From Paraphysomonas bandaiensis (lineage: Eukaryota > Protista > Chrysophyceae), in the NCBI GenBank assembly GCA_965644295.1, contig CBFFRP010000073.1, forward strand, positions 50,839 to 114,838: DNA of 64,000 nucleotides. Reading direction: 5' to 3'. Both the position numbers and the translations under genes were made by a program. Positions 1-60,590 of the stretch are shown in pieces; the stretch's first letter is position 1; each line of letters begins with the position of its first letter. The notes under the pieces were generated by a model, which did no database searches, was not told the origin of the DNA, and was given only the letters and a program-made list of their open reading frames with translations.

Positions 1-792
1 CTTTTGATGGCCCCATTAGCCGCCAGATAACGGGCCAATTTTATAGTGGGCCATTCATCCTCCTTCCCCTCAGGCATATCAGCGGCTAGCTCTTCAAATC
101 CAATCAACTTTCCCGTGGCAACACCGTCTTCGAAAAAAACTAGAGTAGGCATGGTACGTATTCTAAGCTTGTCAACGAAAAATGGAGCCTTTTCGGCGTT
201 AATATATATAAACTTCGATTCAATATGACGGGCTGCAAGTTTTTGTAGATGCATATCCATTATTTTGCATCGAGGAAACTCTCTGTGGTAAAAATGGCAA
301 ATGACATGAACGCTTCCCGTCACTTCTGTCAGAAATTCATCCTGTGTTATTTCTCTGTACTGCCCATGACCTTTGCCAATATTTTCTAACTTCTGCAGTT
401 CGGAATTTTTTATCTCTCTCAGGCGCTTTTCACGCAGCATGCGGAGCTCTGCATCCTCATCACCGTGATTATCATCATCGTCATCTTCATTCATAGGTGC
501 TTCTTCATTCTGTTCAGAGGCCGCAGCTGCCGCTTGGGCTCTTCGCCGTTTCTCTTGTGCTATCCGAGCCTGCTCCTTTTTATATGCCTCCCCAGTTGGA
601 CCGTCCACAGAAGTATCATTACCACCTTGTCCCTGGGCATATTTAGCTTTCAAATCATCCACAGCTTTACCCATTCTATTGTTGACCTAATATACCGTAT
701 AAGTGTAGAATTATAGTCATATATAACGTACTCACCTCTTGGGCTACAGCTCCTTGCATTTCGGGTGTCATAGCGGGAGATGATTTCAACAT
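1..792 (-). CDS. Phosducin-like / thioredoxin-domain protein (TXNDC9/PLP1 type); 2 exons (792-736, 686-<1), 3' end outside window
   Basis: Manual translation MLKSSPAMTPEMQGAVAQE|VNNRMG...GHGQYREITQDEFLTEVTGSVHVICHFYHREFPRCKIMDMHLQKLAARHIESKFIYINAEKAPFFVDKLRIRTMPTLVFFEDG; 49-nt GT-AG intron 735-687. Missed by the ORF track. Confidence 0.9.
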
Positions 793-1743
793 CTTATCTT
801 TTTCTGTTACTCTACCTGACAATAATGATCTACGTGTATGTTTAACCACAACTGGAACTGAGCTGCGTGAGTGATATACAGCACCAGTATATATAATGTG
901 TATAAAAAAATTTAAACCAAAAGAAGCCTGTTTTTTTATAGTCGTTTCATCTGTAGTGTAGTATATACTGTGTTGTAGTACAGCAGATAACAGATAGTGT
1001 ACCGGTCTACAGATACGTCAAGTGGTGTAGAGGTACAGATACAGCGCAGTTTCCCACCGCCCCTCATAGTATCGAGACACCATTTATGAGCCATATATGA
1101 GTGCCGTATATACGGGATTAGGGTGACTATTGCGGTGTATCCGTCAGGTGTGACTACTGTCATTGCTACTTTGGGTTCCCAAATTGTCGGCCTGCTACAG
1201 GGAGAAGAGGGAAGAGTGCACTTGATTAGGGTGGAAATTTTCAGATGTTTTCGGAGCAGACTGGTGAAGCTGGTGATTGGTGCCTTTAGAGGATATATAC
1301 CAGTCGGGAATATCTGTAGTAGCGGTGTGGGTGATGTCGTAGTACGTGCCGTGCATCCCTGCGATCAGTAGCCTGCAGCAGGTTGCATCCAGCATAGTTC
1401 GTGAAATAGCAGTAATCAGTGATAAGCTCCGGGTACAGTAGTGATAGGAATATATTTAATGTGAAGAATATTAATACTTGGAATATACCTGGTGAAAATG
1501 AGCAAGTGAGTGACGATATTATGAATTTTGGTGGCATCGAGAACTATACTTTAATCAGTGGTGGCATAGCTCGTCGGTTTCTATATAAAATACATCTATT
1601 AGCAAGAAAATAAATTAACTCACGACTGAACATGGATAGTACTTTTGAATTCAATTATGTCACGAAATCGTGTACGATATAGATATTAAGACTTACTAGC
1701 AATACAAGCAACTTGACATGCATTTCTCGTTGTCACTATAAAT

Positions 1744-2496
1744 CAGGGATAGGGAACAATATATTGCAATACTATTGTTATATAGCGTTCCATCAATAGT
1801 ATTGAAGGATTTTTTAAACCGGTCCTACAATACAATTACAATATATTGTCAATGTATTGCAATATATTAGTATGACTACTCAGTAGGTAAACACATCCGT
1901 AGATTTCATTTTTAGTATTAGTCATTAAGATCACATGACAACCAAACCAACTGTTGCTTATAGCTAATAAAAATCCACCTCGTCCTCATCCTCTGAGCCA
2001 TCATCGGTGAGGTCAACATCACCATATTCATCCACAGAATTAATTGAAATATGCTAGTATCCGGCCATAACTGTCGAATAGCTTTCAGAAATAACAGCAT
2101 ATTAAGTAGGATGGATACTTTTGCGCAACATTGATATAATATGTTTAGCTGTGCTGAACAGACGTTCCCATGTATTGGAAGTACATACCAGGGCCAGGCA
2201 ACCGTTAATGACTCGTGGATCTGTACGTTTCTTAATTTTTTGAGCTGACTGAAGATTTTTAGTCGCATTGTCAACATCAGCTTCATTATCCTTTGTAATG
2301 TTGTAATCAATTTCTCGGTTATATATATCCATTTTGCACCCTACAGCAGTTGAGAATCTTCTCTTATATGACTATCATAATATTGATTGCAATGTATTGC
2401 AATAGTATTGTGAGCTCTTTTAACAGAAACACTATTGATGGAATATTTGACCAGTCCACTAATCAATATATTTTACAATATTGTTCCTTATCCCTG
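1744..2496 (-). mobile_element. Non-autonomous hAT DNA transposon (family hAT-A), internally deleted
   Basis: TIRs CAGGGATA(G/A)GGAACAATAT at 1744 and ending at 2496; perfect 8-bp TSD CTATAAAT on both sides; residual hAT dimerisation motif TSNTWERLFSTAKH...LNMLLFLK (frameshifted). Confidence 0.9.
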
Positions 2497-2889
2497 CTAT
2501 AAATTCAAGAAAGGTAGTTGTAGGTTGCAGTAAAAATTATCAGTACAATGCTATATGATCTGATAGCCTTGCTTGTTGATCAAAGAAGAACATCAGTAGC
2601 ACTATTAAATATTTGTTTAGGTATCGATGAGTATGAACAAAATTTTTCTTGCTTTGCTATAATCGGTACACAGATAAAAGCACATTCGTACTATACAACT
2701 AACGAACAACAGTCCTGCTTAGCATTATGAAACATACAACTGCATAAACATCGTTAATTGAAAATACCGTTCCCAGGAAAGTATAAAAGATATGCCCATA
2801 GTCATGCACTTCATTTTACATGACTACGAGAGTAAAAAGTAATGTCAATATAGTATTTACAATGTACACATTAGGTAGCATATATATCT

Positions 2890-4189
2890 CTATATCCTGT
2901 TCCGACCATAAGAGTGATTTCTCTTTAATCCAGATGCAAGCTGCGGCCTCGCAATGCTAGGTAGAGCTATACTACTCCGCAAGGTAGACCTGCTAAATGT
3001 TTTGTTCATCGAGGTACGGGTCGATGCTGCGGGGTGGAGCTCATTTCCTTCAAGTTTAAATGATTCGTTTTTCCGGAGTACATACTTTGCCGGAGATATA
3101 TCTCCCACTTGTGACTGTTGGTGATGATGGCGCAACATACGCTGATTAGTGTCTATCGGGGATAGAGACAGACCTGAAGGTGGGCAAATCGTGTAATCTA
3201 CTTCATTTTCATTCTAAATTAAAATGAGTACATATAGGGATTTCGGTGTTTCCAGTACCTGAGAAAATGAGGACGATGGAGTGGAGAAAGTTGACAATGA
3301 CGAAGACGACGAGCAGCTAATACTCTGTGGGTCGAAATCCAAAGTTCGCAGTAGGGATGTGGGCAGAGCATCCTCCAGGGGTACCAGTAATGGAGGACGC
3401 CTAGCCGGAGGGTTCTCCTCTTGATCTTGTGCTTCATGTTCTGACAGATCCTTTGAACCACTACTAGAGAGAGAGATACACTGAGGGTTTCTGATGACCT
3501 GATGCAGATACATAACCGTCTGCTTAGATTTCTGCATATGCTGATCGTGTAGCACCACCAATGTATCTAGGTTCTTTCTTTTTCGGCCCTTCACATAGTT
3601 TACAACTCCAGCTGACCTACGATAGCGATTATATATTACTTTCAATCGCAAACACACACCTTCTACTACGATGCCTGCTCAGTTCATGCGCTTCCCAAGC
3701 TCTATCTATCTCAAACGATCTGAAGGCGGCATTATTTACTACGTGCTGCATCAAGACCCCTCGCCGCTGCTGCGTCAATACTGTTTCAGTGGATAATACG
3801 CTGCCACTGTCAACAAGAGCATCAAGTTTATGCAATTGGAGTTTACGAGATGATAAGTTCTGCGCAATGGCCACAAGGAACTCGTCGAATGTTATTTCAC
3901 CAGAGTTGTCAATATCTGCCCCATTAAACATATTTTTAACTTCACTTTTGTTTTTCATAATGCCGGATGAGAGAACCACATTGGCTAGCTCATCAATACT
4001 AACCGTTCCGCCTTTGTCGGCATCCATTGCGTCAAACCACTTGCGGTACTTCATGAGCTGATCATCTGTAAAGGTTCGCTTCTGCTCCTTTACATACAGC
4101 CGTTGAGCCAGTGCCTCTTCGCGAGACATGTTAACGGCAGATAGAGACGGCATACGCTCAAGCGGGTTGCGTTTGATCTGCGGGGTCAT
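2890..4189 (-). CDS. EF-hand calcium-binding protein with low-complexity C-terminus, about 3 exons
   Basis: Two EF-hands DADKGGTVSIDE and DIDNSGEITFDE; ORFs 3629-4189, 3214-3657 and 2890-3138 join via short GT-AG introns. Confidence 0.8.
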
Positions 4190-37539: not shown

Positions 37540-38317
37540 GCACCAAGCTCAATGTCTCAGTTGAGACCGTGGTTGTGTTACATCAGCGGCTCCAGGCTCA
37601 GATTGTCTTCTCCTCCCCACGCATGGCTGTATTTTGTATCACACCACACTGCCGACAAACACCTTGTCTTACCATGTTGTACATGCTTCCCGTTCGATAA
37701 CGTGGCTTTGCAACCATTATCTTCACTAACTCCGTCAGTTAAACTAAGTGCCTGCACCATTGCAGCGCTGTCAGTTCCTATTGGACATCTCCCTTGTAGA
37801 CGTATCTGTCTCACACACCGTTCTCTACGGTTACAACCACTCATCGCATGGCTCGTGCGGGTAGGCACTCGAAAACGGTCCACTTGTTCATTCGCTAACA
37901 CCCATGTTCCCCATCGGCCCCGCTACCTTGTAAGACAGGACCATTTCTTGACGACCGCACAAACCAACCCAGCATGGTTAGTCTGTGCGTCTATTCCCCG
38001 ATGCAAATTGCACACAGTGTATGTGTAGTCTTAAGCGTTCCAGTGTTGTAGTAGTAGACTTAGATCACTGCTTTCACTTGTCATGCTGTACGTTGCACAA
38101 CGTGTCCCCTACATACACACCTATCATATAGCGCCGGTGAGTCCTAGGACACACGACAATGGCGAAACTCGCAATCAACATCAAGAACGGAAGTGGTCGC
38201 ACCTTGGTGCTTGCGGCGACGCACAAGCAGCTTCTGTAGCGTTAAATAGTAGGATAATGGAATTTGTGCTGATTAGTTATGGGTAGAGGTCTAACTAGTA
38301 TGTCTAGCATTCAACTA
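37540..38317 (-). mobile_element. Family H (Helitron-like) mosaic element, continues at 46449-46510 after the nested insertion
   Basis: 37997-38317 plus 46449-46510 is near-identical to the reverse complement of 54334-54719; 37570-37690 matches 55565-55683. Confidence 0.75.
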
Positions 38318-39249
38318 AAGTCGAGGTAATACCAAAACCTGGTAAAGCGATTTCACCAGGTTTCATATCTAATTAAGTATGGAGTTATTATTTTACTGTA
38401 ATTTGTATCTGAGAGGTTAAAGATAAAGAAAAAGTTGCAATTATAGTTGTTATTAGCAATAATTATTGCGTTACAAGTTGGCCCTGCCACGACTTGTGTT
38501 TTGTAATATCATATTCTCATATAGCTGCATTTGCCTCTCTTGAGATTGCAAACGCTCCAACCGAATAGCCTGGTTTTGGATACAATGCATACGCATAAAG
38601 CTATCTTCACCACTACTACTTACACTAGTAGTATTAGTACCTATGCTCTGAGACGACGCGGCTACAGCCGTTGGGGGCGCAGTACTAAAGCAACCTTAAG
38701 ACAAACGTGGGAAAAATGTTCAAATTTGGGACTTTTGATTGAAAGCTATGTTCTACGAGTAATTTTAATGTTAATTTGTCCCGAAATGTTATTCGAGTAG
38801 TTTGCAAGAAGTTTTCATAATTATAGTATGATATTTTAATAAAATATATGATATATTCATTATTTATAAGTAGTTACCGTGGGGCTAGTACGTTTTTCCA
38901 TAACTTTTGGGGCTGAACCTACTGCACTCTAGTATCTTTTCATTCATAAGGTACAATTTCTACTTCATAACTAGCACAAGTTCTATTGACTCTTTTCATG
39001 ACGTTAGCAGCTTCCCTTCCATTCCTTCAGCTACTTCACCGACTATGAACTCTATATCATATTTTCCATTCTTGTATTCTAATACGGCACCATTAATATT
39101 GTGAATTTTCTGATCTTTTCACCTATATTTCATAGAAGTGTTCGTGCCCACTACTATTCTCAGCACTACTATCGCCACAAGTTTCAATGCATTGCGTCGA
39201 TGACCTCATTTCCAATATCTTCACTCAACTATATCTTCATTTCCACTTT

Positions 39250-41620
39250 CTTCACTCATATACTGCTTTCACTTGAACAGAGCTCTTCCTCACTGGGGAG
39301 CTGCTAACTTGAAATCGTGAACGCTTCTTCTTATGGACAACCTTTCGACGAACAGTTCTACGCAACTCAAAATCACTGCCATCATAGGACACATCAGACA
39401 ATACAACGGTCAAGATTGAGTGGGTCACGACGCCCTCCAGGAGTAGCCACATTCATCAACAATGACGCCATCGCCCTGTCCCCCAATGCAATCAACAAGT
39501 GCATTTATCTCCCCATGTGCAATCCAATCTTCCGCTACCACATTCTCAAATGAATTCATGGGGTCATCGCCTGGATGCAACCTGACCACTCCGCTTATTC
39601 CTCCAGTAAATCCTCTTGCCTCCACCTCGGATATTAATCATATGTCCTTGACGAACGAATCGGGATGCCATATCCGTTGGGGACTCTCTCCCCACAACTC
39701 AAAATTCCGACCTCATGTGCAGCCAGCTTTTTCCTTCTCTTCCACTTCCTGAAGACCTGAACTTATACCGGGAGAGCGTTCCTATTCACAACTTCTCCGT
39801 TAATCATACAGCGCTCAACACGCACACTGAGATCAACGTGGTTATCTGAACGCTTAAAGCCCCATCAACTCCATCGAACACAGCCCGTGGCGCACATCCA
39901 CTGAAGATCGCTGGCTATACAGCGATCACTCAAGGGAACAACCTCCACAGGTTCCGTAGTTTCCCTTGAGAAAAGGATATCACCAAGTAAGTGGTATTCG
40001 AAGACGGTGGTGATATATTCTGCTACCGTATCTACACGTAGAATTCTGACCTTGCCCACTCGTTCCCCATTCGCGGAGAGCAGATAGATGTTTCCTTGGA
40101 ACTCTATTCGGCATTCGTATAACACCGCATCTATCACTCCTCTGGACCCTTCATTAAAAGAGTAAGGGTCAGGAGGTTGAGAGGGCTATGACGATAGAAT
40201 TACCATCCATCCATGTAAATACCTTGGTCGATATCCTTCATCGGGTTATCGGAAACATCCGCGGACTTGGCATATCGTTTGGAAGAGTCGGAAATGATCT
40301 GACCTACGTCGTCTGCGCAGTATGCGCGGTAAAACACCCGTACGCCTTTGCTTAAGCACACTGTAGCAAGGGCCAGCGCCTCAAACGTCCACTGAAGTAG
40401 CGCCTTCTCACCTATGATACGGGCATTTACGAGAGGGTCGACGTGATGTCGAGGGCTTCTTATAATCTGGAATGGCAAAGAGATCTTAAAGCACACGTGG
40501 GGTCTTATTCGTCGACAAAGCTTTCTCAATCTTAGCTTTATACTGTTGAGGGGTATATATACATACTTCGATTGAATTGCTTTTCACAACAACATTCCAA
40601 ACTTGGGAGTCGATATCCTCCTGAGTGTGTCCTACCATCAGCCTGGTAAGAACAAATCGCTTGCACAGACGCCTTCTTGCTGCAATCAACTCGTACAAGG
40701 CAAACCAATCGAATAGTCTTCTCCATGGTGTCCAAGAGACAATACATCGCAACATTTGCACAATTATTAATTGTATGAAATGTACGATACAGTATATAAT
40801 ACTACCACGGTTGCGGTTAAAACGCCTTGAAGGTGTGCTGGGGCATGCTTTCCATGGTGAAAAGCATGCATCATCGTGATTTATTTTCCCTATCCATATG
40901 TGACTTATGGGTTCGTCGAAAAGTGTACTAAGAGCAGCATAGCATTGACATTTTCCTATCACTCCCTCATTACTACGTAGAGGATGCAGTGAACCCAGAG
41001 ACGCAAATTGCTCCACAGATATTGCTCCACGTCCACATTAGTCAGATCGTTAATATACTTGTGGTGGACCTCCTTAATATATCGAGGTTCGAGATGAATA
41101 TCCCCACCAAGATGGGGTTGATAGTCACCCACTACGTGAAAGTGATCAATCATCCAACCATACGCAGATAATACCACGGGGCTTTTGGGGAGAGCTCTGT
41201 TGCTGCTACCTCTTTCTGCGTTAAATGAATTCCAAATGACTTTTTGCAAGACCAGCGAGAAGAGCAGAAGCAACTTGGCTACAGGCATTCAACTTCGCCT
41301 CGGTGTTAGTTGAGCCACCCTTCATATCATTGATAACACTGCCAACATGAGAAAAGGACACAGCGTACACATTGCAGAAACAGTCCTGTAAATAAAGAAC
41401 CTAAACTTAACTCATAATTCGTCCATAACTATATACCTTGCAGACACCACTGATTCTTGTAATCATTCTGTCCACTACCTTCCAATCAATCCATGCAATT
41501 TGAAAGAAGACTACGAATGAGTTTTTTCTCCCGACGATTCATAAAATCACTCTCGTGGATACAGTCGAAAGCCAAATCCACAGCTGCATCATATTCCACG
41601 CAAAAGGCATATATCATTGC
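39250..41620 (-). pseudogene. Decayed transposase of the inner element (GHTxEDID type; Sola-like / DUF7869-like, tentative)
   Basis: ELIAARRRLCKRFVLTRLMVGHTQEDIDSQ...IYTPQQY; LQWTFEA...KGVRVFYRAY; several frameshifted fragments. Confidence 0.65.
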
Positions 41621-41757
41621 AACATGTCGGCCTCACAATCACATCAGGATACTTCTTCAGTTCAAAACGATCTACGATACACAATAATTTTAGTTCCATC
41701 GAATGAGGCAAAATACATATATACTGTATGTTCAATTTACTACATATATAATATACA

Positions 41758-43117
41758 TATCAAACAAACTGATGTGGACATATATGCCATGTGGGGCGCG
41801 GGTCCAGGGCGCTCAACCTTTCTATGACCACCGAATTTGCTCTAGAAAGGAGCTACCCTAGCGAGCGGCATCAGCCACAGCATTGCTGCTATGTAAGTCA
41901 TAGTGGGAGCTCTCATGGGCCAGGGAATTACACCCCGTTAAACTCTATATACCATAAGGTCTACAGAGTAAGCCCTCGCAGTGGACTCGCACCACTTTAA
42001 GCACATGCCGAGCAAGGCCGCGCAAACTAGTACCCCTTCTCTACGTCTACCCCAGCATATACGAGCATACAGTATACTACTACATGATACATGATGTATG
42101 TATATATCAAACAAACTGATGTGGACATATATGCCATGTGGGGCGCGGGTCCAGGGCGCTCAACCTTTCTATGACCACCGAATTTGCTCTAGAAAGGAGC
42201 TACCCTAGCGAGCGGCATCAGCCACAGCATTGCTGCTATGTAAGTCATAGTGGGAGCTCTCATGGGCCAGGGAATTACACCCCGTTAAACTCTATATACC
42301 ATAAGGTCTACAGAGTAAGCCCTCGCAGTGGACTCGCACCACTTTAAGCACATGCCGAGCAAGGCCGCGCAAACTAGTACCCCTTCTCTACGTCTACCCC
42401 AGCATATACGAGCATACAGTATACTACTACATGATACATGATGTATGTATATATCAAACAAACTGATGTAGACATATATGCCATGTGGGGCGCGGGTCCA
42501 GGGCGCTCAACCTTTCTATGACCACCGAATTTGCTCTAGAAAGGAGCTACCCTAGCGAGCGGCATCAGCCACAGCATTGCTGCTATGTAAGTCATAGTGG
42601 GAGCTCTCATGGGCCAGGGAATTACACCCCGTTAAACTCTATATACCATAAGGTCTACAGAGTAAGCCCTCGCAGTGGACTCGCACCACTTTAAGCACAT
42701 GCCGAGCAAGGCCGCGCAAACTAGTACCCCTTCTCTACGTCTACCCCAGCATATACGAGCATACAGTATACTACTACATGATACATGATGTATGTATATA
42801 TCAAACAAACTGATGTGGACATATATGCCATGTGGGGCGCGGGTCCAGGGCGCTCAACCTTTCTATGACCACCGAATTTGCTCTAGAAAGGAGCTACCCT
42901 AGCGAGCGGCATCAGCCACAGCATTGCTGCTATGTAAGTCATAGTGGGAGCTCTCATGGGCCAGGGAATTACACCCCGTTAAACTCTATATACCATAAGG
43001 TCTACAGAGTAAGCCCTCGCAGTGGACTCGCACCACTTTAAGCACATGCCGAGCAAGGCCGCGCAAACTAGTACCCCTTCTCTACGTCTACCCCAGCATA
43101 TACGAGCATACAGTATG
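41758..43117 (-). repeat. Tandem array of about 3.9 near-identical 347-bp units; candidate structured ncRNA on the minus strand
   Basis: Period 347 (identical ORF calls at 41791/42138/42485/42832); one substitution noticed (about 42469); multiple hairpins. Confidence 0.95.
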
Positions 43118-44744
43118 CTATATATATACATGTATATCTAACTCTCAGTCATGAAGACACTCAGCTACACTATAAGCATACAGCACACCAGCGGCACCAC
43201 TAACCTGTGAGTGACACATACTTGGAACGTGAAGAAGTCATAACCAAACTCTACCTCATCATAAGGGACAATCAGATTGTGTGTGTGTGTGTGCTGACAG
43301 CTCTGCGGAATATATTTGAATTATCTCACTGCGAGTAACACACACACACCTACATATATACATACATACATCCACATGTCCAAGTCTCTATTTTTGATGT
43401 GTGCATGTTTTCATACGAAAACCGTGACCCTCATCATCACCACGCATGACCCTCATCACCGTACTGTATACGTATATACGCAAAATACCATATCTAATTT
43501 TGAATGTAGACATCATGGTCACACATACATGCATATACATATATAGACATGTAGACATGGACATAATGATGCGCATTAAGACGCACTGTGCCAGAGTATG
43601 ATATAGTAATATCATGACTGATTTAGATGCATTGCAAGGTATGGTTCAGGATACAACAGGGGACCTGAGTGAGAGCGATACGGGTGACGTCGCCATCACT
43701 GCACCCTGTACAGATGTATGCACCCCATCTCCATCTGCCACATGTGCGGGTTGAGGTGGTTGTGACAAGGAGTTCCCGATTGATGAGAAGGGCTCCGATT
43801 TTTATCATGGAGTGCTATGTGGCGCATGTAATTGGATGTAATCATATGTACCCCACATCACACATATATACAGAGAGTGTACATGTTGTCACGTTCGTAG
43901 TATTCATCGAAGGTTCTAATCTTGGAGATGCTCTTCAGTCTGACCTCACTACTGGTGATGGCACCCCTCTTTCACAACTTCCCTCTAGTCCCGTGACGTA
44001 TTACTACGTAGAAGATTACTGTTTTGATGATGATGACCCTGGTCATACTCTACCAAAGGTGACGACCCTCTTACTCCTCTGTCTCAGCCCGTTGCATATG
44101 AGGAGGTGAGTTCCCGTAGTATATATTAGTGATTCAATTTACTCCTTCTTACTATTTTCGGACAGTTGCTCCCCGGTTAATGGTTCTTTGAGGAGTAAGT
44201 TATTACATGTATACCCCTCTTTCACTTATGTACCATGCTGGTAGTATTAATACCGGTCAGTGTAGTTGTTGTGCTTGGTGTAAGTTTTTAAATGTTTTTT
44301 ACTTATATTGTCGCTGTATTACTTAGTTAATATTGTACATGTTTTATATTGATGAGGCTATTTCGATACTTACAGACGCAGTAATAACAATTTCGTTGTG
44401 CTGAGCACTGTCCTGAAATCATTCTTGGAATATTGTTATTTTTTTAATAAAATAACAATAAGAATAGTATTGTATAGCTACTATAATATTATTACACAGT
44501 TTTAATAATATTAGATTAATGAAAACGATAAGTATAGGATAGGGTACAAAGGGGTCCAAAACGTGGGAAAAAATTTTTCCCACGTTTGTCTTAAGGTTGC
44601 TTCTAGTAGGTGGAGGATCATAAGCAGGTGGAGGATCATCATTTTTTCTCATTAAAAGATCACGAAGTTCTGCTAGTCCGGACATCATTTCCTGACGAAG
44701 TTCAGCAACAGCGGGAGGTATCAGATCTGCTTTCTGCTGAGATT

Positions 44745-45418
44745 CGACGACCCCGTCACCATCTTCATGAACAGTACTACTGTCCCTGCTCGTGCGCTTT
44801 CGTGGTACCTCTTCCTCCGAGTCGTCGTTGGATATGTCGCCACGAATTTCGACCACATTCTTCTTCCCTTTGTACTTCTCCTACACCATTATACTACACA
44901 GTTAGTACAGTGTATAGTAACAACGCACAACAATAATCAGAACAATACCGCATATATACGTACGACGACCCCGTCACCTTCTTCATGAACAGTACTACTT
45001 ACCCTGCTCGTGCGCTTTCGTGGTACCTCCGAGTCGTCGTTGGATATGTCGCCACGAATTTCGACGACATTCTTCTTCCCATTGCACTACACACAGCAGT
45101 TAGTACATGTATAGTAACAGCACACAACAATAATCAGAACAATACCGCATATATACGTACGACGACCCCGTCACCTTCTTCATGAACAGTACTACTTACC
45201 CTGCTCGTGCGCTTTCGTGGTACCTCCGAGTCGTCGTTGGATATGTCGCCACGAATTTCGACGACATTCTTCTTCCCATTGCACTACACACAGCAGTTAG
45301 TACATGTATAGTAACAGCACACAACAATAATCAGAACAATACCGCATATATACGTACGACGACCCCGTCACCTTCTTCATGAACAGTACTACTTACCCTG
45401 CTCGTGCGCTTTCGTGGT
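44745..45418 (-). repeat. Tandem 197-bp repeat (about 3.3 units) = 123-nt exon + 74-nt intron
   Basis: Period 197 (44985/45182/45379; first unit 218); minus strand GTACGT...TACTAAC...TGTAG introns at 45160-45087 and 45357-45284. Confidence 0.85.
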
Positions 45419-45437
45419 GGAACAGGTGTATCAGAAA

Positions 45438-46072
45438 TGCATGTTGAAGCACGTGAACGGGGAACAAGAAGTCTTTGTGGCCGTCCAGGTATAAGGACGG
45501 TTAGAGCACAACCCACTGTTCAATACAGCGGGCACAACTCAGCTGCAATTAAGCGCATCCCTCCACGATTAGTTATTCCAGAGTCAGATGGATCTTTACC
45601 TGACGAACCGAGAGGTGTGCTCAATGCACCGTACATTGGACGAGAAGCACGACGTGAGGTCAACAGGAAGAATGCTGCTGCTAGGAAGAGGGAGGAGCAG
45701 GAGCGTATCAATGCAACCCGTTTAACAGAAAGTGATTCTGAGGCTGAAGAACAAGTATCAGACCCAGAATCAGATTGTCATCGTTCGTCACCAACATTCG
45801 CAGTTGGTGAACTAGTTTCTAACATACACAATTTAAGAGGTATTATTTCTGAGGTAAGCAGCGACATGTATGTGTAACACATATATTTAATCAATAAATG
45901 TAAGAGATATATATACTCAGGTACATAGCGACAATACTTACGATATCAAATATAATGATGGACAGTATGACAACAACCTAGCGGCAAGTTACTTGAGGCA
46001 CATAAAAGGTTAGTATATGTAATAATATGATTATTATGTAAACGTTATAATATATTATATATTATACAGTAA
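45438..46072 (+). CDS. Transposon-borne gene fragment with C-terminal Tudor-like barrel, spliced
   Basis: FAVGELVSNIHNLRGIISE|VHSDNTYDIKYNDGQYDNNLAASYLR across a GTAAGC...CAG intron; second copy at 28730-28920. Confidence 0.5.
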
Positions 46073-46628
46073 CTTCGTCAAAGAAAAGGACTAAAAAACA
46101 GCAATGGGAAATAGTGACAGAGCCTACAACCGAATGGGTGGATCAAGGCGCTCTCTCATCTGAGAATGTTGTGACCGGAAAACGTCGACGTAGTAGTGGG
46201 GTATCGTACAAAGAATAGCTTTATATTATGCTTGAACTGTATAATATATGTGTGTAGTCGGTGACTTTTATTGCTGTAAAACTGAAGTAATATGGAAGAA
46301 ATTAGTAAAAAATATTATAAATAATACTTTTCACACTGTTATTAACTTCATAGTTACTTATTGTGCATAGTTATACCCTTTTCCGACCATCACCAAAAAT
46401 TTCACCAGGTTTTACATCAAAACCCAGGTTTTGGTATTACCTCGACTTCTAGCCACTATATTGGTACAGGTTTTTAACGCCTATTGCTAAATAAAAAGAC
46501 TTTCAATATACCGTTCAGAATGTAAGTTACTTATACGCAGATATTAATCACAGTCCTTAAAGTTTTTTAAGTTCGAATCCTAATATGTCCTTATACAAAA
46601 TAGTAAATAATTGCCAATTAATTACAAC

Positions 46629-47892
46629 CAGGGCTAGGAAACAATATATTGCAATACTATTGTAAGTTAGCGTTCTATCAATACTATTGATGGAGATTTT
46701 AAGCAGACTCAACAATACAATTACAATATATTGCAATATATTGTCAATATATTGCAATATATTAGTATGACTAAGCAGTAAGTAAACACACCCGTAGATT
46801 CCATATTTAGTATTAGTCATTAAGATCTTATGACAACCAAACCCACAACTGCTTATAGCTACTAAAAATCCACCTCGTTCTCATCCTCTGAGCCATCATC
46901 GCTGACGTCAACATCACCATATTCATCCAAAATTAGTTCTGAGGCTGCTTAAACTTCCCCATGAGTAGGTCTACGTGCCGAATGAGAGGTCTAATGCCTT
47001 GGTCAGGTCTTGTCACAACTCCTTCCTTATTTCGCTTCTCTTTGCTCCCGAGGAGTTCATTGACCGCAAGGTCGATGAGATGACATCCAACTAGGGGCAC
47101 ACCTATACACTATTGAAAAGTTATAACAGACGACGGTTTTACTCAAACAAAGGTATTACCGGAATCGTTTGCCAGCTTTCTGTTTGTAACGCAGTTGTTC
47201 CCAATGCAAAACTCAACAATAATGCAAACATTATCAGCATTAATCACTCTACCCACTCTCAAAAATGTTTTTGATTTGCCCGAAGGTTGGAAAACAAAAG
47301 CATCCATGGGACCATTGGTGCAGACAACCCGGAAAATACTTCTTCATGGAATCTTCCCACTCACCGTCATACATGTGACGATGTGTGGTTCTTCAAGCTG
47401 TTGTAGCCATTCGATATCTTCTGTACTCGTATGCGCCCACAGACTTTTCATTCATGCTTGTTTGGTTCACCTTCAACCGAACTCCAAAAACAGCGGTAGA
47501 TATCTCTACTTTTGTATGCATTCATCGTTCAGATGTCTCTTCTTGTCAATATAGGATATATATACTATATTAAGAGGTACTGTACATACATGTAGAGAGG
47601 TGGAGAGTGCTGTTTGAGCTGGCGATACATAAAAAATAGAAAATAACATCAAAAATAGGCTTTTTTTCTTATTTTCCGGATATTTGTATACATGGACTTG
47701 GATTTTTTACCCTACAGTTAAGGATCTTCTCTTACATGACTATCATAATATTGATTGCAATATATTGTGAGCCACTTTAACAGAAACAATATTGATGGGA
47801 TTTTTGGCCGGTCGAACAATCAATATATTTTACAATATATTGCAATATATTGTACAATGTATTGCAATTCAATATATTGTTTCCTAGCCCTG
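46629..47892 (-). mobile_element. Non-autonomous hAT (family hAT-A), second deletion derivative
   Basis: Perfect TIR CAGGGCTAGGAAACAATATATTG; 8-bp TSD ATTACAAC; BED-finger-like remnant KVCGRIRVQKISNGYNSLKNH; arms homologous to 1744-2496; inserted in a hAT-B-like end terminating at about 48016. Confidence 0.92.
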
Positions 47893-48234
47893 ATTACAAC
47901 CTACCTGCGAGCAATTATATTGCAATTATTACGTATATTTCATGCAATTTAAATGGAATTACGATTTATTGCAATTCAATTTATTGTTGCGCAGCCCAGA
48001 TTGATACGCAGCCCTGGTACTGTATGTATGTTGATCTTGCAACTGGTGTAACATTCCTATATTCTATATGGACTACTTCAGGGATCATACATGTGTAGCA
48101 CGGCGAAACCAGGCCAACATTATATACAAAGTTATTGTCGATAGGGAATACGTAACAGAAATTCTACGAGGAAAGTATCAATCAACACGAAACAACACAG
48201 TGACTGTAACACAAAAAAATATATGCATATGCAA

Positions 48235-54333: not shown

Positions 54334-55685
54334 ATATATATTGAAAGTCTTTTTATTTAGCAATAGGCGTTAAAAACCTGTACCAATATAGTGACTAGTT
54401 GAATGCTAGACATACTAGTTAGACCTCTACCCATAACTAATCAGCACAAATTCCATTATCCTACTATTTAACGCTACAGAAGCTGCTTGTGCGTCGCCGC
54501 AAGCACCAAGGTGCGACCACTTCCGTTCTTGATGTTGATTGCGAGTTGCGCCATTGTCGTGTGTCCTAGGACTCACCGGCGCTATATGATAGGTGTGTAT
54601 GTAGGGGACACGTTGTGCAACGTACAGCATGACAAGTGAAAGCAGTGATCTAAGTCTACTACTACAACACTGGAACGCTTAAGACTACACATACACTGTG
54701 TGCAATTTGCATCGGGGACTGCCTTTTATGTACCTCACGGCAACCAGGGGAAACAGTACTATACCCTGCTGAGATTGGCGATCTCAGTGGTGGTCTTCCT
54801 TTAGGCATTGTGCCAAGTGACTCGGAGGTATGTGGACGAAGATCTTGCAAAAGGTTATGGCCTACTGTGAAGAAGCGTCAAAATAGAATCTTTTGCTGTC
54901 TTAGCCAGCGGTAGAGAGCACATGCAAGAGAGTGTATAGCTGGACAGGGGTGGGATATGAGGGTCATCCGGTGTGTCCAGCAACAGGGAGTCGAGAGGGA
55001 GTGTGATGGTGCAAAAGAGGCAACATCTGATTGAGGAGAGTGGGACTGCGCAACAGAACTAGGTCTGCCAAGGTCGGGTACTCTGATAGACCTATGCACG
55101 AGATGATCATGATGATGGTCTGGAGGAGACACTCGGACGTCCTCAGCTGCCCTTGTTAGTGTCTGTGTTGGTGCACGGGGGTACAGGCTGAGGCATAGAG
55201 TGTGTGTGGAAGGAAGATGACGGCAAGGTATCAGAGACGAAGGGAGGGGAGATGGTTTGTCTGGAGGTTCTCGAGGAGGAGGTAGAGTGTAAGGTGCGTG
55301 TGTATGACACAGTGCAGCGGTGTTATGAGTGTGTTGGACAGAGAGAGAGAGAGCCGGTGATGTGTCCAACAGTACAGGTATACAGGTACATGGACAGGTA
55401 CATGGGACGGAGTGAGCTGTGTGGTGTACTGCAGTATATTACACACAAGAAGGACGGAATTGGAGCCGGACGCTTGTGCCGCTTAGGCATTCTTCCTGGG
55501 CCAGAAGTAAGGGCCCTCCTATCGTAATAAAACAATCGTTTCATTACTCTTCCTTTCCACTGGAAGCATGTACAACATGGTAAGACAAGATATTTGTCGG
55601 CAGTGTGGTGTGATACAAAATGCAGCCATGCTTGGGGAGAAGAGGACAATCTGAGCCTGGACCCGCTGATGTAACACAACCACAA
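54334..55685 (+). mobile_element. Family H mosaic element with variable cargo
   Basis: Starts TATATATTGAAAGTC; modules shared with 37540-38317 but a different ~840-bp middle. Confidence 0.7.
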
Positions 55686-57339: not shown

Positions 57340-57590
57340 CTACATATATTGAAAGTCTTCCTTTTTGGCAGTAGTAGGAGTTAAAAATCTGCACCAGGGT
57401 AGTGGCTAGTTGAATGCTAGATAGACAAACTAGTTAGACCTCTATCTATAACTAATCAGTGCAAACTCTATTATCCTACAGAAGCTGCTTGTGCGTCACC
57501 GCAGGACAAAGGTGCGACCATTTCAGTTCTTAATAATGTTGATTGCGAGTTTCGATATTGTTTTGTGTCCTAGGACTCTTTGGCGCGTGT
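57340..57590 (+). repeat. Diverged family H end
   Basis: Homologous to 54334-54585 including the T-hairpin. Confidence 0.75.
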
Positions 57591-60104: not shown

Positions 60105-60590
60105 GTATCCGGGAATGGGCCCACCTCAAGGGCATCCGGAACAGGGCTCACCTCAGGGGTAGTATCCGGGGTATTGGGCTGCCTGCTGAAGTCAAGCATC
60201 CGGGATGTTCGCCTTAAGAACTGGTCGCACCTTGGTGCTTGCGGCGACGCACAAGCAGCTTCCGTTGCGTTAAATAGTAGGATTAAAAAGTGTATACTGA
60301 TTAGTTACAGGTAGAGGTCTATAACTAGTTTGTCTAGCATTCATCTAGCTACTAAAAGTTGGTGCAGGTTTTTAACGCCTATTGCTAATATAATAAGACC
60401 TTCAATATATACCTTGGTGCAGATTTTTAACGCCTCTACTGCTAAATAAGAAGACTTTCAATATATGTAGTTTAGTAGGATAATAGAGTGAGTTATGGGT
60501 AGAGGTCTAAATAGTCTCTCTAGCATTCAGCTAGCCACTACATTGGTGCAGATTTTTAACGACTATTGCTAAATAATAAGACTTCAATAT
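60105..60590 (-). repeat. Family H ends, tandemly reiterated
   Basis: T-hairpin at 60222-60262; three repeats of TTGGTGCAG.TTTTTAACG...AAGAC.TTCAATAT. Confidence 0.75.

Follow-up and report, generated by a model that had tools for sequence, protein, structure and literature searches.

A 64,000-nucleotide stretch of the genome of the chrysophyte Paraphysomonas bandaiensis (C73:50839-114838; hereafter the window) contains two DNA transposons, one inserted into the other, and each is bordered by the trinucleotide CTA on both sides. This locus raises two questions, namely to which group of transposons the elements belong and whether the repeated CTA reflects a rule of target choice. The original prediction, made from the sequence of the window, proposed that a Sola-like/DUF7869-like transposase, AAG termini and a CTA duplication may together define an uncharacterised lineage with a preference for CTAG targets. 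When the elements were examined against the 62.6-Mb genome assembly and against related elements from metagenomes, they were found most probably to be defunct, non-autonomous copies of one Sola1-type lineage, in which the 3-bp duplication, the ends and a second gene are unlike those of canonical Sola1.

Two nested elements and their unoccupied sites

The outer element spans 38318-46448 and the inner element, nested inside it, spans 38688-44602. Their terminal inverted repeats (TIRs), flanking duplications and the unoccupied target of the outer element are as follows.

38315..38317, no strand: outer element, left copy of the 3-bp duplication (CTA), read from the sequence; the paralogous empty site at 54337-54718 has a single CTA
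38318..38342, plus strand: outer element, left TIR of 25 bp, starting AAGTCGAGG; 25/25 complementary to 46424-46448
46424..46448, minus strand: outer element, right TIR; complement of the left TIR
46449..46451, no strand: outer element, right copy of the duplication (CTA), read from the sequence
38685..38687, no strand: inner element, left copy of the duplication (CTA), read from the sequence
38688..38720, plus strand: inner element, left TIR, starting AAGCAACCTT; 33 nt, 97% complementary to 44570-44602
44570..44602, minus strand: inner element, right TIR; pairs with 38688-38720
44603..44605, no strand: inner element, right copy of the duplication (CTA), read from the sequence
54337..54718, minus strand: unoccupied paralogous target of the outer element; matches the joined flanks at 99.5% over 382 bp, across the junction

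The junctions read CAACTA/AAG...CTT/CTAGCC for the outer element and GTACTA/AAG...CTT/CTAGTA for the inner one, in both cases a 3-bp CTA duplication inside ACTAG, and a 4-bp duplication was incompatible with the flanks of either element. The empty outer target contains one CTA only, and its junction reads CAACTAGTC. When the inner element was excised in silico together with one CTA, an open frame of 163 amino acids (aa) was regained; the sequence rejoined in this way was also found uninterrupted at 16 other outer-family loci (∼13 distinct copies). The structural claims of the original prediction were thus borne out, namely two nested TIR transposons at these spans (with perfect outer ends and inner ends at 97%), AAG...CTT termini common to both, a CTA on each side of both, an empty outer site in a paralogue near 54395, and an open frame restored by removal of the inner element. 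Its description of the two pairs of TIRs as unrelated was not upheld. When aligned with the ends of related elements, outer and inner ends alike were seen to start with AAG (positions 1-3) and to contain a CAAA(A)C(G/C)TGG block around positions 17-25, and because both features are common to the two elements, their TIRs are not unrelated.

Duplication length and target choice across the genome

The pattern of the outer ends gave 285 matches in the genome (∼140 copies) and that of the inner ends gave 28 (14 copies), vs. none for the reversed control in either case; these ends therefore are not chance occurrences. Among the ∼140 outer-type and 14 inner-type copies, 22 pairs were surveyed for their flanks. 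A 3-bp duplication was found in 10 of 12 outer pairs (GTA, AAT, AAA, TAC, CTG, TTC, TAA, GTT and CAA, plus CTA in the window) and in 7 of 10 inner pairs (CGG, ATG, AAG, AAG, TTG, and CTA on contig C336, plus CTA in the window), for a combined 17/22 with 13 different sequences. In both window families, the length of 3 bp is fixed and the sequence of the duplication is variable. A third AAG-ended family, with ends AAGTAAACAWTATGCAAACGTGG and 129 matches in the genome, was flanked by duplications TAT and CGG (3 bp in 2/2); a 5.7-kb copy of this family on C118 contained no long open frames. Random or 4-bp duplications in other copies had been named as grounds for abandoning the original prediction; in the genome survey of TIRs the sequence did vary, whereas the length stayed at 3 bp.

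Target bias was measured over 87 distinct ends of the three AAG-ended families in the genome, 83 of them outside the window. The middle base of the duplication was A or T at 50/55 outer ends (p = 8e-8) and 23/26 inner ends (p = 8e-4), counts that overstate the independent sample since the two ends of one insertion have this base in common. Moreover, C occupied position -4 at 25/55 outer ends (p = 4e-5). A weak consensus, C-NWN-G, is the only real bias.

These data bear directly on the idea that the lineage is defined by a CTA duplication at a CTAG (ACTAG) target. In its favor, CTA flanks both window insertions and one further inner-family copy (on C336), and CTA or TAG accounts for 12/87 ends when the window is counted. 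With the window excluded, the share was 8/83 ends, against the 6% that the NWN bias would give (p = 0.13), so that CTA is not enriched. Furthermore, the 17 paired copies with a duplication carry 13 different trinucleotides, none of the six resolved metagenome insertions described below has CTA, and the C336 copy lies at CCTAT rather than CTAG. Given that CTA/TAG is no commoner than the NWN bias predicts, the CTAG idea is refuted by the copy survey, and the paired CTA duplications in the window are a coincidence; we regard this version of the lineage as hardly tenable. Of the claim of a distinct lineage, what stands is AAG...CTT ends with a 3-bp duplication, which are a real lineage mark; the CTA rule and the CTAG target fall.

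Gene remnants within the two elements

Each window element retains remnants of both a transposase gene and a second gene (open reading frame 2, ORF2), as well as a tandem array.

39428..41526, minus strand: inner element, DUF7869 (Sola1-like) transposase pseudogene; tblastn with intact relatives, aa 3-712 of the L093 transposase
41757..43132, no strand: inner element, four tandem 347-bp units between the gene remnants; Tandem Repeats Finder, period 347, 4.0 copies, 99% matches
43605..44106, plus strand: inner element, ORF2 5′ remnant, divergent from the transposase; tblastn, open frame 43669-44106
38474..38687, minus strand: outer element, ORF2 3′ remnant, split by the inner insertion and resuming at 44606-44880; BLASTP, tblastn and the restored 163-aa frame
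44899..45418, no strand: outer element, 2.6 tandem 197-bp units; Tandem Repeats Finder, 99% matches
45416..46212, plus strand: outer element, transposase 3′ remnant; tblastn with the L097 and C373 transposases

The alignment of the inner transposase pseudogene to its intact relatives was broken by at least 5 frame changes. One piece of it, 40489-41037, retained a weak match to PF25273 (DUF7869; E = 0.0066) and the motif VGHTQEDID. In the inner ORF2 remnant, tblastn aligned 43605-43829 with aa 5-79 of ORF2 from L093 and aa 23-61 of ORF2 from C373; this remnant corresponds to the first ∼80-146 codons of the second gene. In the outer element, 38474-38695 (minus strand) matched ORF2 of the intact relative L097 by BLASTP (E = 1e-8, 40% identity over 47 aa), and tblastn located the tail of ORF2 at 38498-38608. 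The outer transposase remnant aligned with aa 673-791 of the L097 transposase at 45416-45775 (E = 1.8e-16) and with aa 880-906 of the C373 transposase at 46132-46212. Each 347-bp unit of the inner element contains the same open frame of 69-75 aa, and this array is present in the C336 copy as well; the 197-bp units of the outer element likewise each hold a repeated short open frame.

Without its inner guest, the outer element measures 2213 bp, with both genes represented by their 3′ ends only, and it is a typical internal-deletion derivative. Nearly full length, the inner element has frameshifts in its transposase, a shortened second gene and the four-unit array. A 5.9-kb copy of the inner family on C336 was 99.7% identical to it and had the same defects, and shorter copies of the family, which are internal deletions, were 95-100% identical. 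From these copies it appears that the inner element was mobilised recently and in trans. More generally, identities of 99.5-100% between copies suggest that transposition in this genome was recent.

Two further observations concern the surroundings of the outer element. The joined host flanks, 37995-38377, match not only the empty target but also 57345-57586, 60218-60590 and 1741-2034 in the window; because this target is repeated several times, the host sequence that was hit is probably a member of yet another repeat family. To the right of the outer element lies a pair of 35-nt inverted repeats, 1.2 kb apart (46626-46660 and 47861-47895; also 46713-46763 and 47821-47864), accompanied by clusters of CAATATATTGCAATATATTG palindromes. 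It could represent a further small TIR element or a foldback.

Relatives in the genome and in metagenomes

At least 23 DUF7869 matches were found in the genome, several of them in open frames of 700-1150 aa. An intact DUF7869 gene of 907 aa lies at C373:284465-287185, with a right end, AAGTAAACAATATGCAAACGTGG, 140 bp past its stop codon that places it in the third AAG-ended family. A divergently oriented gene of 703 aa, with a weak match to Myb, precedes it. No left end of this C373 element was detected in the 3.4 kb upstream. An autonomous outer-family copy was sought among elements of ∼7 kb, of which L065, L066 and L068 contained low-complexity repeats only. A longer outer-family copy on C168 matched aa 444-791 of the L097 transposase (42% identity, E = 8e-86). 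As a candidate autonomous source it was rejected, since its transposase is reduced to the C-terminal 407 aa, with another insertion in front.

Several of these copies have been interrupted by other sequences. In L067 (C159:104132-111453), an outer-family copy with a TAA duplication, a non-long-terminal-repeat (non-LTR) retrotransposon, or long interspersed nuclear element, is inserted at 335-3004; its 890-aa frame encodes an endonuclease and a reverse-transcriptase domain, and another frame, of 773 aa, has no family assignment. In the C168 copy (L098), a 727-aa frame of unknown type at 1262-3442 severs the N-terminal half of the transposase gene. Also, at about 680-720 of L083 (C132), a member of a 728-aa DUF7869 gene family is broken by one more AAG-type end (reverse complement AAGCAAACTATTTTCAAACTTGGGAAAAAA); this family comprises at least 4 near-identical copies (C93, C132, C346 and C400).

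Complete two-gene elements, with AAG ends like those of the window and 3-bp duplications, were recovered from metagenome contigs. Four of them (L097 and L100-L102) are separate insertions in one ENA assembly, flanked in that order by ATA, TCG, TTA and ATA; their ends start AAGTCG(A/C)ACCGACCACAAAACCAGG, similar to the outer end in the window. A fifth, L099, has ends that start AAGTCGAGTCGAC and the duplication CTG. A single insertion locus sampled four times by the Joint Genome Institute (L093-L096) has ends AAGCAAACAWTACGCAAACGTGGGAAAAA, similar to the inner end in the window, and the duplication TTT. In all, 6 of 8 metagenome insertions had a 3-bp duplication. Intact members measure 5-6 kb and have two genes on opposite strands. 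One named organism, the chrysophyte Spumella, was found among the relatives.

In the metagenome elements, the transposase is accompanied by a convergent gene of 535-662 aa. The conserved second gene, 630-700 aa long with a weak Myb/SANT-like match, showed 29% identity between its C373 and L093 versions (E = 4e-42). To our knowledge, a conserved Myb-like second gene has not been described for Sola1.

The DUF7869 transposase

A word search returned 146 relatives of the transposase, all with DUF7869 and none of them named. A profile search (E ≤ 0.001) yielded 8634 cluster representatives, of which the best 150 were inspected. All 42 transposases that were aligned matched PF25273, with E-values of 1e-23 to 1e-32 for members of the lineage. 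The intact protein, of ∼900 aa, comprises an N-terminal winged helix, a CxxC motif and a DUF7869 catalytic core of RNase-H fold. Across 30-42 aligned sequences, the D of DGMQQ, the D of QIDGGSEN, and the H-T-H, D and D of VGHTHEDID were invariant. In an AlphaFold model of the transposase (mean predicted local distance difference test score, 89.5), strands and helices followed the RNase-H order, and the three acidic residues lay where strand 1 ends, just past strand 4, and where the helix that follows strand 5 begins. The invariant columns and their RNase-H positions in the model point to an all-aspartate (DDD) catalytic triad as in Sola1.

The best matches in a structure search with the model were Mos1 (Z 9.4, 172 residues aligned) and Metnase (Z 9.3), and further matches were retroviral integrases (Z 8-9) and IstA and TnsB (Z ∼8). 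Foldseek gave only weak RNase-H-fold matches, and a profile search of PDB sequences returned only low-complexity noise. The winged helix of RFX5 aligned with residues 11-92 of the model (Z 6.9), and 14/42 members had a weak match to the RFX DNA-binding family. On the strength of the model and the alignment, the DUF7869 protein is predicted to be a DDD transposase with a DNA-binding head.

Ulp1-type protease domains (PF02902) accompany some of the DUF7869 transposases found in metagenomes, either by fusion or by clustering, as in P0058, P0065, P0078 and the cluster of P0059. One such entry is filed in NCBI under an alphaproteobacterial metagenome-assembled genome, a placement that probably is a binning error.

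Placement relative to Sola1 and rival families

The Sola superfamily with its Sola1 group (e.g., Sola1-1_AP and Sola1-1_Ec32) is said to go back to Bao et al. in 2009. When the DUF7869 transposases were compared by eye with the core of Sola1-1_AP (PMC3985635 supplement) and with the transposase of Ectocarpus Sola1-1 (PMC12477816 supplement 2), ordered motifs were found in common: FP.LK...CK.C..L, MDGANQS, VDN...ENKN and MVGHTH..ID..F. Together with the PF25273 matches, this agreement supports the earlier reading of the transposase as DUF7869/Sola-like. The duplication departs from the 4-bp AWWT of Sola1, being 3 bp in the window, as the empty site confirmed. A search of the literature on DUF7869, on strings of the catalytic motifs and on Sola1 with a 3-bp duplication found nothing.

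Two other assignments come with a 3-bp duplication. It is the hallmark of Zator, a group usually placed near Tc1/mariner, and a lineage of Zator/ISAzo13 type, with the DUF7869 core as a far relative of bacterial transposase-36, would also fit the confirmed 3-bp length and the mariner Mos1 core as best structural match. Mos1, however, was tied with integrases at Z 8-9. The VDGGPDEN of the Zator-1_HM core (PMC3985635 supplement) resembles QIDGGSEN, but in catalytic motifs one and three, as well as in the N-terminal CxxC block, the DUF7869 transposases are far closer to published Sola1 than to Zator-1_HM. Moreover, PF07592 was not among the 25 of 56 families listed for the 42 transposases at E ≤ 10 (a search in which HMMER filters drop most weak matches), nor did it match individual proteins at E ≤ 1 in sequence-to-profile tests, and no transposase family was among the NCBIfam matches listed. 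The lone PF07592 match in the genome was weak (E = 0.18) and lay on contig C66, which has no listed DUF7869 match. As far as sequence comparison can tell, the Pfam and NCBIfam tests and the published Sola1 sequences favor Sola1 over Zator, and we consider a Zator origin unlikely. A far-diverged PIF/Harbinger-like element would bring with it both a layout of two genes, a transposase and a Myb-like partner, and an NWN duplication of 3 bp. Yet no member matched DDE_Tnp_4 or Plant_tran in Pfam scans, the catalytic motifs are unlike Harbinger and match Sola1, and the duplications are not limited to TWA; this assignment is very improbable. CACTA (CMC) was ruled out by the AAG...CTT ends and by the lack of any Transposase_21-type match in Pfam.

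Several points weigh against the placement of the window elements in a Sola1-type lineage with 3-bp duplications. The likeness to Sola1 is a comparison of motifs by eye, with neither an E-value nor a tree. Five of the 22 paired copies in the genome lacked matching 3-bp flanks, and the L103/L105 metagenome family has AAG-type ends with no resolvable duplication. No intact transposase was found in the genome behind outer-type or inner-type ends. Finally, the Myb/SANT-like matches of ORF2 (E = 6e-4 and 0.028) fall below Pfam cut-offs. A more specific proposal is that the AAG-ended two-gene DUF7869 elements constitute an undescribed fourth branch of Sola in marine protists, in which the stagger shifted from 4 to 3 bp and a Myb-like helper became fixed; this we advance tentatively, as somewhat less likely to be right than wrong.

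Proposed mechanism and significance

The AAG ends of the lineage carry repeated AAAC(G/C)(T/A)GG motifs. The transposase, probably aided by the Myb-like protein, may bind these motifs near each end and then excise the element, which would be inserted at a 3-bp staggered cut whose repair would give rise to the 3-bp duplication. Target choice would be loose, favoring A or T as the middle base and C/G immediately outside. In the window, the inner element jumped into the ORF2 remnant of the outer one, and both elements would have been moved in trans by enzymes from other copies. The role of ORF2, the identity of the bound motifs and mobilisation in trans are inferred.

Each superfamily is taken to have its own fixed duplication length, which serves to classify short non-coding copies. 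The lineage would break this rule, as it combines a Sola1-type enzyme with 3-bp duplications and a conserved helper gene, so that its short copies would be taken, wrongly, for relics of Zator, Harbinger or CACTA. In addition, the Pfam family DUF7869, which has no stated function, would be tied to a role as transposase. If the lineage proves to be a fourth branch of Sola, it would offer a natural case for examining what sets duplication length in DDD transposases.

Comparison with known systems

With PIF/Harbinger, the window lineage has in common two proteins (a transposase and a putative Myb-like DNA binder), an A/T-centred 3-bp duplication and many short non-autonomous derivatives, whereas its transposase is not DDE_Tnp_4, its ends differ and its duplication is not TWA-specific. 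Zator is similar in its 3-bp duplication and compact RNase-H core, with ∼38-40 aa between the second and third acidic residues, but differs in that the window lineage has no detectable similarity to PF07592 and in the first and third motifs, as compared with Zator-1_HM.

The closest likeness by motif is to Sola1. By eye, the transposases have in common, and in the same order, FP..K...C..C, D-G/L-x-Q (strand 1), D....(E/Q)N (after strand 4), and (V/R)GHT(H/Q) with a downstream D; they also have in common an all-aspartate triad, a large transposase (∼900 aa) and elements of ∼5-6 kb. The ends of insect Sola1 contain GAAAGTGG at about positions 15-22 (PMC3845634, Table 1), which may be compared with CAAACGTGG in the window family, and in Ectocarpus Sola1-1, too, the strand opposite to the transposase bears a gene (PMC12477816). 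In Sola1, the duplication is 4 bp, namely AWWT in insects (PMC3845634) or 4 bp ending in A, and in Ectocarpus Sola1-1 it is again 4 bp, with AACCG ends (PMC12477816 supplement 3). The window lineage, in contrast, duplicates 3 bp (NWN), starts with AAG instead of GGACCG or AACCG, and carries a conserved, putatively Myb-like second gene.

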